Shown: piece after piece, positions 51,501 to 57,500 of the stretch
Numbering within the stretch: the first letter of the stretch is position 1
Layout: every line of letters begins with the position of its first letter
NCBI RefSeq assembly: GCF_001194135.2
Contig: NC_069007.1
Span: forward strand, 7,011,670-7,074,020
DNA from: Octopus bimaculoides
Lineage: Eukaryota
Length of the DNA stretch: 62,351 bases
Direction of reading: 5' to 3'
Translations under genes and position numbers: made by a program
Notes under the pieces: generated by a model
Told to the model about the DNA's origin: nothing
The model's input: the letters and a program-made list of their open reading frames with translations, nothing else
Database searches by the model: none

Positions 51501-54500
51501 GCAGCCTAACTACAGAGCCATACCTGTACACACACGCACACATGCACACGCACACACACATGCATACACACATGCATACACACACATCCATACAAACACA
51601 TGCATGCATACACACACACATGCATGCACACATATGCATACACACACACACACATATCCATACACACACACACACATATCTATAATAATAAACGTGAAAT
51701 TCTGTCTGTTTGGAACCCCTGTATCTCAGTCTACATTTGATCGACACAGACATATTATAACTTCTGTGTCACGCTGAATCTCCCCGAGAACTACGTTAAG
51801 GGTACACGTGTGTGTGGAGTGCTCAGCCACTTGCACGTTAACTTCATGAGCAGGCTGTTCCGTTGATCGGATCAACTGGAACTCTCGTCATCGTAACTGA
51901 ATGCCAACAACAATAGTCATATTATTTAGCTCTCTTTAGTTTTGGGCTGTTGGCCCAATTTGCCCTCAACAGAAGCTAGCTTAAAAATCTACAGAGAGGG
52001 CAACTTCTAAGCTAGTTATTATATATGTTTGTATTTATTTTCAGTGCAGGAAACAAGTCCAAAACCAAACAAGAGTTTCCGCAACGATTCACCAGGAAAC
52101 CAGTTGACTCTGACAGAGCATTCCAGATCAAACTTATCGGAACAGAGCAGTGAGACCACTAACCAGAACAGATCAAACTTATCGGAACAGAGCAGTGAGA
52201 CCACTAACCAGAACAGTGGCACTGGAATTATCTTACCATTCCGTGACTCGCCAACTAGGTTATCTACTGACATGATGGCAGATTTCTCTCCATCAAAGAT
52301 TTGCTATGTATCCGATGATGAAATGTCAACGTCAAGTAGTTCGTTTGATAACGAGGATATTGGTCTTAGGTCTGTGGATCAACCCATGGACCAGAAAGAT
52401 GGACGCTCACCTGTGTATAGTTCCAAGAGGCTTGATGTTTGTGTCTGCTCATGTTCACAGAGTGACAGTGACAATGAGTGTGACTGTGATGATGATGATG
52501 ATGATAATGACAATGGTGGTGATGGTAATGATGGTGGTAGTGATGGTGGTAGCGGTGGTGGTGGTGTGACACGCATCAATGATTTTGCTCCTACATCCTC
52601 GGACAATATCAACAATATGCTTGGCAGTTTTACTAACTCACCTGTGTGTAATTCTGGGACTCAGAGGTCCAATGCTAACACACCTAATGATCCTTCTCAT
52701 TCACCTAGATCTGATCGTTATACACTTGACAGTCGTACAAATACACCTGAACATAAAGATACATCTTCCAGACACATTAAGTCGCCGAGACCTAATAGAG
52801 TGAAAACTAACACACCTGACAGTGAGACAAGCATACCTGGATTTAACAAGACATGTACTAGACATGCTGAAGCACTTAGATCTGATACTAATTCACCTGA
52901 GAGTGATGAAATTACACCTGGACATACTAACAACACATCTATTAAACCAACAAAATCACCTAGATCTAATCTCAATACACCTGATAGTGATATAGACTCA
53001 TCTAGAGATTATGATAACGATACACCTGTCAGTCATGTTATCTCACCTAGATTTAATATTGTCTCACCTGACAGTGATATTAACACTCCTAGATACATTG
53101 AGTCACCAATATCTAATGCAAGCACACCTGACAGATCTGGTAGCAGCACACCTGGACTTAATCATACACCTGATAGAAATACTAAATCACCAACATCTAA
53201 TAACAACACACCTGAGATTGATAAAGACACAACCAGGGATAATAATGATATATCTACAAGACGTGTTGAATCACCAAGATCTAATACCAACACACCTGAG
53301 ATTGATATAAATATACCTGGACATCTTAACAATGTATCAACCACTTGTGTCGAATCAAGATCTAATAGCAACACACCTGAAAGTGATAGCAACTCACCTG
53401 AGATTGATATAAATACACTTGAACTTCTAAATAATGTATCGACCATTTGTGTCAAATCATCGCAGTCTGACATCAACATACCTGAAAATGATAGCAACAC
53501 ACCTGATATCGATATAAACACACCTGGAATTCTCAACAACATAACAAGCACCTGTGTCAAATTGTCACAGTCTAACATCAACATACCTGAAAGTGATAGT
53601 AACTCACCTGATAGTGATATTAATATACCTGGACTTCTAAACAATGTATCAACCACTTGTGTGAAATCAAGATCTAATAACAACATACGTGAAAATGATA
53701 GCAACTCAAACAATATTGATGGACTTCTTAACAACATGTCAAGCACTTGTGTCAAATCATCTAGATCCGACACCAACACACCTGAAAGTGATAGTAACGC
53801 ACCTGATATTGATGTAAATGTACCTGAACTTCTTAACAACATATCGAGCACTTGTGTCAAACCACCAAGATCCAACACTAATACACCTGAAAGTGATAAA
53901 AATGCACTTAAATTTAATACTAACACAGCTATTAGTCCCACAAACGAGGGAAGAAGTCTTTCGAATACATCAAGCAGTCTTAGTATCTCACCTACAAGTT
54001 TTACCAACTCACCCAAGCTTAAGGCTAACTCCCCTTCACCTAGAAGCTTTGGTAAGTCTCCTAGACTCGAGACTGATATTGCTGGAAGCCATATCAACAC
54101 ACCTACATATATCAACAAAGACATTAGTGACCCTTCAGGACATCTTAGCAACACCCCAAGAAGTGATGCCAACACACCTGTTGATGTTACAAACACCCCT
54201 AGAAGCAACATCGCCACACCTGTTGGGGTTACGGTAACACCTGAAAGTGATTTACACCCAGATGAGAACATTGATAATTCCAAAAGATTGAATTGTAATT
54301 CTGATACAAATATGTTGTCCAAGACAGCAGTCATTGTAAACATGCCAAGATGTAACTCTCATACAGGTATGATGCAAGATACACCTGCTAAACGTACCAA
54401 ATCATCAAGATATAATGCCAGCACACCTGACAGTGATAAAATCTCATTTAGACGAAATAATAACACATCTGCTAGAAACACCAGGTCACCTGTTACAATT

Positions 54501-57500
54501 ACATCTAGAGATAATTCTCTCACAGATCTGGTGTCCGACACAACATTGAGTACTAATATATCTAGAGATAACTCTTGTATAGATGTGGTGTCTGACACAG
54601 CAGTTGTTGCGAAAACATCTAGAAGTAACTCTCGCACAAATCTGGTGTCTGACACAGCATTGAATACCAAGACAACTAGGAGTAATTCTCATATAGACAT
54701 GGTCTTCAATGCAACACTTGTTTCTGAGACATCTAGAACAAGTTCTCACACAGATTTGGTGTCCAACATACCAACAAGTACCAAAACATCTAGGAGTAAT
54801 TCTTCTACAGATATGGCATCTGACACAGCAATTGTTACCAAAACGTCTAGAAATAATTCTCGCACAGATATGGCATCTGACACAGCAATTGTTAGCAAAA
54901 CGTCTAGAAATAATTCTCGCACAGATATGGCATCTGACACAGCAATTGTTAGCAAAACGTCTAGAAATAATTCTCGCACAGATATGGCNNNNNNNNNNNN
55001 NNNNNNNNNNNNNNNNNNNNNNNNNNNNNNNNNNNNNNNNNNNNNNNNNNNNNNNNNNNNNNNNNNNNNNNNNNNNNNNNNNNNNNNNNNNNNNNNNNNN
55101 NNNNNNNNNNNNNNNNNNNNNNNNNNNNNNNNNNNNNNNNNNNNNNNNNNNNNNNNNNNNNNNNNNNNNNNNNNNNNNNNNNNNNNNNNNNNNNNNNNNN
55201 NNNNNNNNNNNNNNNNNNNNNNNNNNNNNNNNNNNNNNNNNNNNNNNNNNNNNNNNNNNNNNNNNNNNNNNNNNNNNNNNNNNNNNNNNNNNNNNNNNNN
55301 NNNNNNNNNNNNNNNNNNNNNNNNNNNNNNNNNNNNNNNNNNNNNNNNNNNNNNNNNNNNNNNNNNNNNNNNNNNNNNNNNNNNNNNNNNNNNNNNNNNN
55401 NNNNNNNNNNNNNNNNNNNNNNNNNNNNNNNNNNNNNNNNNNNNNNNNNNNNNNNNNNNNNNNNNNNNNNNNNNNNNNNNNNNNNNNNNNNNNNNNNNNN
55501 NNNNNNNNNNNNNNNNNNNNNNNNNNNNNNNNNNNNNNNNNNAAACGTCTAGAAATAATTCTCGCACAGATATGGCGTCTGACACAGCAATTGTTACCAA
55601 AACGTCTAGAAATAATTCTCGCACAGATATGGCGTCTGACACAGCAATTGTTACCAAAACGTCTAGAAATAATTCTCGCACAGATATGGCATCTGACACA
55701 GCAATTGTTACCAAAACGTCTAGAAATAATTCTCGCACAGATATGGTATCTGACACAGCAATTGTTTCCAAAACGTCTAGAAATAATTCTCGCACAGATA
55801 TGGCGTCTGACACAGCAATTGTTACCAAAACGTCTAGAAATAATTCTAGAAATAATTCTCGCACAGATATGGCATCTGATGCAGCAATTGTTACCAAAAC
55901 ATCTGGAAATAATTCTCGCACAGAACTGGTGTCTGACACAACATTGAGTACTAAAACGTCTAGAAATAATTCTCGCACAGATATGGCATCTGACACAGCA
56001 ATTGTTTCCAAAACATCTAGAAATAATTCTCCCAGAGACATGGCATCTGACACAGCAATTGTTACCAAAACATTTAGAAATAATTCTCCCATAGATATGG
56101 CATCTAACACAGCAATTGTTACCAAAATGTCTAGAAATAATTCTCGCACAGAAATGGCATCTGACACAGCAATTGTTACCAAAATGTCTAGAAATAATTC
56201 TCGCACAGATATCGCATCTGACACAGCAATTGTTAGCAAAACGTCTAGAAATAATTCTCGCACAGATATGGCATCTGACACAGNNNNNNNNNNTCGCATC
56301 TGACACAGCAATTGTTAGCAAAACGTCTAGAAATAATTCTCGCACAGATATGGCATCTGACACAGCAATTGTTACCAAAACGTCTAGAAATATTTCTCGC
56401 ACAGAACTGGTGTCTGACACAACATTGAGTACTAAAACATCTAGAAATAATTCTCGTACAGGTATGGCATCTGACACAGCAATTGTTAGCAAAACGTCTA
56501 GAAATAATTCTCGCACAGATATGGCATCTGACACAGCAATTGTTACCAAAACGTCTAGAAATAATTCTCGCACAGAACTGGTGTCTGACACAACATTGAG
56601 TGCTAAAACATCTAGAAATAATTCTGACACGGATGTGGCATCTGGCACAACATTGAATACCAAAACATCACAATCAAGTTCTTGCACTGATGTGGTGCTG
56701 GACATGCCACTAATTACCAATGAGTTTGTCAATAACACCGAAAAACCTAAATGTTACTCTGATACAAATGTAATTGCCAACAAACCAAGATATAATTCTA
56801 ACCCAGGTGTGACTACCAACAGGTTTGCATGTAATTCTTATACAAATTGTGTTACTAATCCAGCAACAGCTGCCAATATAGAAATGGCTCGACTGATACC
56901 AGATGATGTATCAGTCTTTGAGAACATGGCACAGTCACAGACAACTGATATTTGGAACAACGGAAACCAAAGTGAAGCCTCTTCACAAATAAAAGATCCA
57001 TGTTCATCACCAGCCAAAAGTCCCTCGGTAGATCCTAATATCATAATGTCCCCTGTTTTGCAGGAGGCCATCATACAACGAAAATCACCAGAGATGCTGG
57101 AAAAGAATCTGACCCCTATGCTGGACATCCTCATCAAAGACAACAGCAACTTTCTCTTCGATGATGACAACACAATAGATGTAGAGGGTGATGGCCACCA
57201 CCACCACCAATCAGATGATCCTGTTGTTTTGTTGTCATCAGTAATGTCAGCAGACAGCTCCAGTGACAGTGGCAAGGATGATAGTGATGGAGACTGCAAC
57301 ACTGACAGCCTGGAGTGTCTGCCCGTGCCAGTCGGGGTCAAGCCATCTTCTTGTGGGCAATTGCCTGTTGTAGGTGGTAGCAGCCATCACCTCATCGGGG
57401 GAGAAACAACAGACGAGACTGGACCACTCAGCACCAACATTGTGACTGTGAGTGTTGCCATGCCCGATGGTGACCAGGGGCTGGAAAGGTTGGTTAATGT

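Follow-up and report, generated by a model that had tools for sequence, protein, structure and literature searches.

A giant exon in the ZBBX ortholog of Octopus bimaculoides, probably a single coding exon expanded by in-frame tandem repeats

Mucin tandem-repeat exons are examples of coding minisatellites, or variable number tandem repeat (VNTR) exons, whose products contain long repeat regions rich in Ser and Thr. The ZBBX proteins (zinc finger B-box domain-containing protein 1) of vertebrates, molluscs, annelids and amphioxus have a colinear N-terminal region of ~390 amino acids (aa) with one B-box (CGQCE…C.QC.E.YC..CF…H.KGAL..HR), the motifs ESAASFQ..WR and (L/I)(S/T)YAERLLLK.HR after it, and a long, low-complexity C-terminal half rich in Ser, Thr, Pro and Arg. 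PMC11317154, citing Ivliev 2012, lists ZBBX as a ciliary candidate with experimental support, and the vertebrate protein is described as “involved in cilium movement” (PMC11052749); a paper on LC8 motifs mentions ZBBX solely in dismissing its motif as a probable false positive, and a literature search linking ZBBX or B-box to cephalopods found no paper. Here we analyze a 62,351-nucleotide stretch of Octopus bimaculoides DNA (contig NC_069007.1, positions 7,011,670 to 7,074,020; hereafter the window), which matches chromosome CM046627.1 of assembly GCA_001194135.2 with 0 mismatches across 50,897 bases compared, has a G+C content of 39.9% and contains 16 runs of N. A ZBBX gene occupies its plus strand from a start at 21455 to a stop codon at 60877–60879, and we put at roughly three in four the probability that positions 52045–57488 within it are one genuine coding exon, expanded by in-frame tandem repeats.

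All of the family features listed above are shared by the octopus protein. An exhaustive HMMER search with its N-terminal 202 residues returned 273 matches, about 100 of them colinear at the same N-terminal position, including opossum ZBBX (802 aa; expect value (E) 9e-20, octopus residues 15–187 aligned to 18–186), the Mya “ZBBX-like protein” and the Gigantopelta “zinc finger B-box domain-containing protein 1-like”; the orthologs from Mya, Gigantopelta and Octopus vulgaris are labelled ZBBX-like by their own sources. A profile built from five lophotrochozoan orthologs recovered opossum ZBBX at 4e-54 and the octopus protein at 3e-60, in the latter over residues 33–389 only. Ahead of the B-box, the N-terminal block (ME..L, REKEER, GG.W..GQ.G.L..Y) is present and colinear with the family, and the Cys/His columns of the single B-box near residues 135–175 are invariant in opossum, an annelid, five molluscs, a 1571-aa transcript considered below and both octopuses; Pfam PF22586 (ANCHR-like B-box) is on record for three octopus models, marked weak. 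Beyond the B-box, ESAASFQ..L..WR is found in O. vulgaris as FHEEESAASFQQALQRWR, the corresponding O. bimaculoides exon being hidden in an assembly gap (33633–34617), and (L/I)(S/T)YAERLLLKKHRR is encoded at ~35990–36035. An earlier note on this DNA, made from the sequence alone, had called the gene ZBBX-like, and the opossum match, the profile, the B-box ligands and three further conserved motifs bear this out. Judged from this locus and its O. vulgaris counterpart, the gene is the ZBBX ortholog.

The octopus gene differs from the rest of the family at its C-terminal end. The motifs LYQMAPRSWRPD and LEWELASE..GR and the V.ALH end could not be found by regular expression or tblastn in the whole window or in the O. 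vulgaris locus, in a search extended 5 kb beyond the stop; opossum ZBBX keeps the ALH end. Searches for hidden downstream or intronic exons bearing the conserved C-terminal motifs gave best E values of 0.04–0.2, on the wrong strand or outside the gene.

The giant exon is bounded by splice sites that fit its neighbors. Exon 12, which precedes it (50278–50519), ends ...ATC T|GTGAGT at 50519, and the junction of T with TG yields Leu across a phase-1 intron. The acceptor AG at 52043–52044 is preceded by a pyrimidine tract, standing after tgtttgtatttattttc in sequence identical to that of O. vulgaris, and the open frame at this acceptor begins only at 52011. At the other end, the donor GT at 57489–57490 (AAAG|GTTGGT, conserved in O. 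vulgaris) leaves two bases, AG, which are completed to AGC (Ser) by the first base of exon 14 (58290–58333, 44 bp), itself preceded by a good acceptor. The phase-1 acceptor and phase-2 donor proposed in the earlier note are thereby both upheld, as is its statement that all visible sequence between them is free of stops: the segments that can be read are open for 980 codons from 52047, 246 codons from 55545 and 397 codons from 56296.

This openness is informative outside a central array of 57-bp repeats. The part before the array contains 818 open codons, with 50.6 stops expected from composition (P ~2e-23), and the part after it 262, with 14.3 expected (P ~4e-7); in 2000 shuffles of each part, not one came out free of stops. 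The argument does not extend to the array itself, where three to four of the six frames lack stops and an open frame is no evidence of coding. Because any stop-free unit opens the whole array, long open reading frames (ORFs) on the minus strand and in the +1 frame arise over it, and those at 54486–56738 (−), 54746–56311 (−) and 54709–55947 (+) were rejected as genes.

In window coordinates the frame is not continuous, as had been claimed, but falls into three segments of which the third is shifted by +1. The exon comprises 4880 read bases and 564 N; the bases actually read correspond to ~1626 codons and not to the ~1790 first estimated. The exon does dominate the protein, at ~70% (1635 of 2336 aa in O. 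vulgaris), in support of the earlier estimate of ~74% of a ~2400-aa coding sequence. Its coordinate length of 5444 is 2 mod 3, and entry in phase 1 with exit in phase 2 requires 1 mod 3.

Two gaps in the array bear on this discrepancy. The first (54989–55542, 554 N) has flanks at unit phases 31 and 55; the repeat register requires 23 mod 57 and the 554 N amount to 41 mod 57, both of which are 2 mod 3, and the gap preserves the frame by coincidence. The second (56284–56293), with flanks at unit phases 42 and 28, requires 42 mod 57 (0 mod 3), unless the two contig ends overlap by 15 bases with a single mismatch, which would serve equally well; this gap is a 10-N placeholder, and the third segment is shifted in coordinates because of it. 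On both flanks of both gaps the open frame is the same frame of the 19-residue repeat unit. Any fill that is in register keeps the frame and gives the exon a length of 1 mod 3, as the splice phases demand. An array of 57-bp units is just what short-read assembly collapses. From the repeat register and the gap-free O. vulgaris ortholog, we infer that the frame is continuous across both gaps.

The O. vulgaris locus (OX597840.1; coordinates refer to the retrieved stretch, which is without N) carries the exon at 37214–42118 (4905 bp), in acceptor and donor contexts identical to those of O. bimaculoides. One base is missing from a repeat unit (ACACC to ACAC) at 40364, corresponding to OX597840.1 ~32,664,002; with this base restored, the exon reads through 1634 codons with 0 stops, and the deletion is probably an assembly error. 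Of the two deposited protein models, CAI9742221.1 continues in the +1 repeat frame past the missing base, and CAI9742220.1 (2336 aa) patches it with a shortened unit and spans the protein from the B-box to the same C-terminal tail as in O. bimaculoides.

Comparison of the two octopuses provides evidence of coding. DNA identity in the unique parts of the exon is 87.5–90%, and 18 of 18 indels over ~3.2 kb are multiples of 3 (3, 6, 3, 42, 3, 12, 48, 126, 36, 33, 15; 15, 3, 24, 6, 3, 6, 15); indels in the flanking introns measure 8, 6, 1, 4, 9, 2 and 7, 32, 19, 16, 6, 2, 2, 10. The ratio of non-synonymous to synonymous substitution rates (dN/dS) is 0.32 in the first 260 codons, 0.56 in a Ser/Thr-Pro zone and 0.45 in the tail, at synonymous divergences (dS) of 0.13–0.33. 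We regard the exon as coding because of these in-frame indels and dN/dS values, and sequence comparison shows purifying selection on its reading frame and, moderately, on its amino-acid sequence. The two species differ at 14 nucleotides in exons 14–15, and in the reading frame that only a transcript with the giant exon would have, 9 of these differences are synonymous and 5 non-synonymous; skipping the exon would shift the frame and lead to a stop after 20 codons. We infer from genomic sequence that the exon is included in the mRNA.

More than half of the giant exon consists of recognizable head-to-tail repeats with periods of 45, 21, 84/105 and 57 bp, all multiples of 3 and all read in one frame. 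Zone A (52045–52640; dN/dS 0.32) is acidic, rich in Cys and Ser and unique in sequence, with a perfect 45-bp duplication at 52124–52216, of which O. vulgaris has a single copy, and a GAT/GGT run at 52492–52566. Zone B (52641–54500; dN/dS 0.56) holds degenerate (S/T)-P-rich repeats (SPRSNxNTPESD), among them six 105-bp units at 53284–53898, and has 43 (S/T)P motifs in 615 aa. Zone C (54501–56720) is the array of 57-bp (19-residue) units with both gaps; 27 units are visible, or ~37 if gap 1 is correctly sized. Zone D (56721–57488; dN/dS 0.45, indels all multiples of 3) is a unique, acidic tail with a weakly predicted helix. Tandem Repeats Finder reported 8.6 + 12.8 + 6.5 copies of the 57-bp unit at 75–88% matches, 6.0 copies of the 105-bp unit and 2.1 copies of the 45-bp unit at 100%. 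The first and last units of Zone C are orthologous between the octopuses and the central ones are species-specific (NNS…DTAIV vs. NSS…DTPIV, with a beta-prone DTAIVTK in the O. bimaculoides units). The nearest relative of a unit lies within the same species for 20 of 27 units in O. bimaculoides and for only 13 of 25 in O. vulgaris, and mean unit identities come out nearly the same whether taken within or between species (0.79, 0.78 and 0.78).

The size of the octopus protein has no counterpart among the named molluscs. Orthologs from 14 named non-cephalopod molluscs measure 832–1294 aa, that of Capitella 810, those of amphioxus 905–915 and that of opossum 802; the octopus proteins reach 2336 aa in O. 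vulgaris and, if gap sizes are roughly right, ~2500–2600 aa in O. bimaculoides, ~1.8–2.8-fold longer than in other molluscs. In the chiton ortholog, the C-terminal half is spread over five or six exons of 81–213 bp, and the largest exon of the gene has 453 bp; in octopus that half is one exon of ~5 kb. The stretch from LYQMAPRSWRPD to LEWELASE spans 134–240 aa of S/T/P/R-rich low complexity in other molluscs, and the giant exon takes the position of this variable region, with both flanking motifs and the ALH end lost. Given that the family’s C-terminal half was already variable and that its conserved motifs are gone, we interpret the exon as an inflation and partial replacement of that half and not as an insert; the part of the earlier claim that stands is that nothing of this size exists in the 14 other molluscs. 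The description of the exon as undescribed biology was overstated, as GenBank already holds the 2336-aa O. vulgaris model under the name ZBBX-like (CAI9742220.1).

The closest relative found outside the octopuses is the 1571-aa transcript, from Logan assemblies SRR27666077 and SRR27666071, whose contigs are full-length transcripts of 4.9–5.3 kb encoding a ZBBX relative of 1553–1572 aa. It shows 52% identity in the phmmer N-terminal match, compared to 39–44% for named molluscs (36.5% over residues 13–342 by BLASTP), and shares with octopus the derived states HGK.CGQCE, CC(L/I)QCTEVYC and KHRSISL; it probably comes from another cephalopod, though it may be a paralog. It is likewise enlarged, with a 981-aa tail following its LYKMSPCSWHPD motif, and its FSSLTKLSVDSLDEE region weakly resembles the last octopus exon (E ~0.4–0.9 at both octopus loci). 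However, the tail has no detectable similarity to the octopus exon and carries DTP…S(V/M)(R/K)S-type repeats of its own, and the transcript retains an LYKMSPCSW motif absent from octopus. Given its 981-aa tail, of unrelated sequence, enlargement may predate the octopuses or have occurred more than once, and may not be confined to octopus.

We propose that the giant exon arose as short coding units in the variable C-terminal half, a region of low complexity, repeatedly slipped or underwent unequal exchange, which would have inflated that half from ~200–320 residues in other molluscs to ~1650–1850 in octopus. The array would still be turning over, its edges being orthologous between octopuses and its center carrying species-specific unit variants, and the exact repeat number is probably close to neutral. 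The expansion is extreme, but its mechanism, in-frame tandem duplication in a low-complexity region, is ordinary. In this respect it resembles mucin-type VNTR exons, with which it shares a single very large exon, head-to-tail units with a period that is a multiple of 3 and a short-read collapse that leaves gaps, and probably also older diverged edges around a homogenized center and species-specific variants. Unlike those, the octopus units are not of the Pro/Thr/Ser mucin type, and the protein is the ortholog of an intracellular cilia-associated protein; its N-terminus is polar, so we assign it no signal peptide or secretory context. No new kind of system is revealed. The locus is instead a clean case of a conserved cilia-associated protein whose variable half was inflated several-fold in one lineage while its N-terminal module was conserved, and offers a way to examine if linker length of this kind is of any consequence in axonemal or ciliary proteins.

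In composition, the exon encodes 30% Ser+Thr, 12% Asn and 13% Asp+Glu. Its product is acidic overall, with an isoelectric point (pI) of 5.1, and that of the 57-bp array is basic (pI 10.3); ~56 Ser/Thr-Pro and ~44 Arg-x-x-Ser/Thr motifs are candidate phosphorylation sites. The proposal that the product is disordered has weak support. Mean hydropathy of 0.402 falls on the disordered side of the charge-hydropathy boundary (0.422), but close to it, and AlphaFold2 run without an alignment on six units plus the tail returned a mean predicted local distance difference test score (pLDDT) of 36.5, the sole feature being a weak helix ending MLDILIK; on the other side stands a beta pattern predicted for the array, described below. 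Sequence searches of the PDB with the exon gave nothing, or one chance match (a single-domain antibody, E 0.009). The product may be pictured as a long and polar linker, rich in Ser, Thr, Asn and Asp, that connects the coiled-coil/B-box module at the N-terminus to a short, conserved, acidic tail; it is predicted to act as an extended flexible spacer or a multivalent, phospho-regulated scaffold. A ciliary or sperm context for octopus ZBBX would be by analogy, drawn from the vertebrate literature.

Several observations weigh against a single, repeat-expanded coding exon with a disordered product. In O. bimaculoides, continuity over the two gaps is deduced and not read, and the deposited O. vulgaris assembly has the 1-base deletion that breaks the frame within the array. 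Protein searches with the exon matched three genome-derived models only and no transcriptome-derived protein: the exon peptide matched two proteins, the RefSeq O. bimaculoides model (1573 aa) and one O. vulgaris model, and the unique exon tail as query matched the O. bimaculoides model only, with no independent transcript-derived protein. The exon tail and many 60-aa windows lie on the folded side of the charge-hydropathy boundary, and AlphaFold2 modeled 13 units (55545–56282) in a regular beta pattern (pLDDT 62.4; predicted template modeling score 0.43). Finally, dN/dS values of 0.3–0.56 and the loss of C-terminal family motifs are also expected under relaxed constraint. As relaxed constraint would produce the same dN/dS and motif loss, a specific function for the expansion is put forward as a proposal.

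Relaxed constraint is at the center of the alternative that survives best, namely that the exon is a coding minisatellite in a little-constrained region, its extra ~1400 residues having no role of their own and its frame being kept only since frameshifts would remove the C-terminal tail or make harmful products. The dN/dS of up to 0.56 in the Ser/Thr-Pro zone, unit variants and a copy layout that differ between two close species, and the perfect 45-bp duplication seen in only one of them are all in keeping with such tolerated growth, as are the missing C-terminal motifs, which suggest relaxed constraint on that half, and a family length that already ranges over 802–1571 aa. Against it, each of the three unique zones has a dN/dS clearly under 1, every one of the 18 indels over ~3.2 kb is in frame, and the ORF has been kept at least since the split between O. 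bimaculoides and O. vulgaris (dS ~0.2). These counterpoints fit an exon that is functional as a whole and one whose composition is constrained and length neutral alike, and we consider tolerated growth a serious possibility, though short of the expected outcome.

A folded array is a considerably less likely alternative. Here the 19-residue units would fold into a regular beta-rich structure, such as a beta-meander or solenoid-like rod, and give the protein the role of an elongated structural element. In the AlphaFold2 model of 13 units, each unit contributes one strand of 13–16 residues and 52 residues reach pLDDT ≥70; moreover, each unit sets a beta-prone DTAIVTK beside a polar SRNNSR turn. 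However, the prediction was made from a single sequence with near-perfect repeats, its other four models reach only pLDDT 44–55, six less uniform units score 33–42, and each 19-residue unit offers only ~5 hydrophobic residues. A Foldseek search of PDB folds with the 13-unit model gave no significant structural match (best E 0.12, template modeling score ≤0.37). When repeats are perfect, a regular beta model is often an artefact, and the present model is possibly one; the prediction keeps a structured rod in consideration. We are more doubtful still that the array constitutes a new structural or regulatory module, whether beta-rich rod or multivalent phospho-switch, with a lineage-specific role in cilia or sperm flagella. 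If it did, selection would act on repeat number, and the ancestral C-terminal motifs would have given way to a replacement instead of simply disappearing.

It is also improbable that the giant exon is skipped in the main product or spliced internally, with a dominant ZBBX of ~720 aa and a rare long form. The stop reached after skipping would lie in the last exon, leaving an mRNA that is no obvious target of nonsense-mediated decay. Yet the giant exon is not frame-symmetric, entering in phase 1 and leaving in phase 2, the downstream exons show their synonymous excess in the inclusion frame, and the tail read in the skipped frame differs at 5 of 20 residues between species; skipping would also leave the constraint on the frame and sequence of the giant exon unexplained.

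RefSeq divides the gene into XP_052833080.1 (1573 aa, “dentin sialophosphoprotein”), which ends in a 6-base pseudo-exon, AAATAA (55553–55558), right after the first run of N, and XP_052833206.1 (430 aa, uncharacterized), which begins at a Met within a repeat unit (56350), beyond gap 2. That these are truly two genes, or that a real stop or intron is hidden in a gap and no single 5.4-kb exon exists, agrees with the first model ending at gap 1, the second starting after gap 2 and the gap sequence being unread, but is very improbable in view of a pseudo-exon and internal-Met start typical of gap artefacts, a stretch between the gaps (55545–56283) that is open in the same unit frame, and a gap-free O. 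vulgaris locus where one gene spans everything. The two-gene split is a gap artefact, and the two RefSeq proteins are halves of one ZBBX ortholog. Dentin sialophosphoprotein was rejected as an identity for the first half, as it has no (Asp-Ser-Ser)n repeats and its N-terminus is the B-box module. The likeness is of composition only (Ser/Asp/Asn-rich, acidic overall at pI 5.1): dentin sialophosphoprotein is a secreted SIBLING protein, whereas the octopus protein is without a hydrophobic leader and has NTPESD-type and 19-residue units, with an array of pI 10.3. Going by sequence, the name is a compositional mislabel.

The concrete yield of the analysis is a set of annotation corrections, covering the split gene, its misnamed first half and an exon lost in another gap; furthermore, one of the two O. 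vulgaris models runs into the shifted frame of the repeat. The lost exon belongs in the gap at 33633–34617, and in O. vulgaris encodes a polyQ stretch and EEESAASFQQALQRWR, a motif conserved across the ZBBX family. Its O. vulgaris counterpart (18165–18500 of the retrieved locus) falls between blocks that align to window positions 33391–33632 and 34850–34988. The RefSeq O. bimaculoides model is without this exon and starts the following one early, with an extra 35894–35923.

The remaining exons located in the window, all on the plus strand, frame the gene. Exon 1 (21455–21514) carries the start codon, matches by tblastn at 100% identity and coincides with the RefSeq gene start at 21455. The B-box is encoded by a pair of exons, the first half at 28415–28554 (tblastn 100%, splice sites read, CGQCE invariant in the family alignment) and the second at 31582–31686, with an approximate 3′ end (tblastn, acceptor read, Cys/His columns invariant, Pfam PF22586). 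The exon with the (L/I)(S/T)YAERLLLKKHRR motif lies at 35891–36457, and the last exon, at 60770–60879, which is in frame with the giant exon by way of exon 14, ends in the TGA at 60877–60879.

The introns flanking the giant exon contain long trinucleotide and short-period microsatellites, at 57521–57795 (TCA/CAC runs) and at 50539–51451, the latter consisting of GGT/GTT-rich repeats around a gap at 50837–50907; these microsatellites give rise to spurious low-complexity ORFs on both strands. Upstream of ZBBX is a separate gene with exons at 2836–3171 and 4542–5408 (+), encoding a coiled-coil-like stretch followed by a Thr/Asn/Ser-rich low-complexity tail; this fragment (2836–5408) had no match among PDB sequences. 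ORF fragments resembling mariner/Tc1-type transposases, recognized by eye, occur at 11388–11822 (−), 30316–30561 (−), 43317–43586 (+) and 44879–45043 (+), and are assigned to introns of the ZBBX gene. Two near-identical 113-aa ORFs with IRWPEHISNMELWQRTNQVSIR and RGRPKNSWRR, at 7857–8198 and 13527–13868 (+), resemble the C-terminal end of a retroelement ORF, again as judged by eye.

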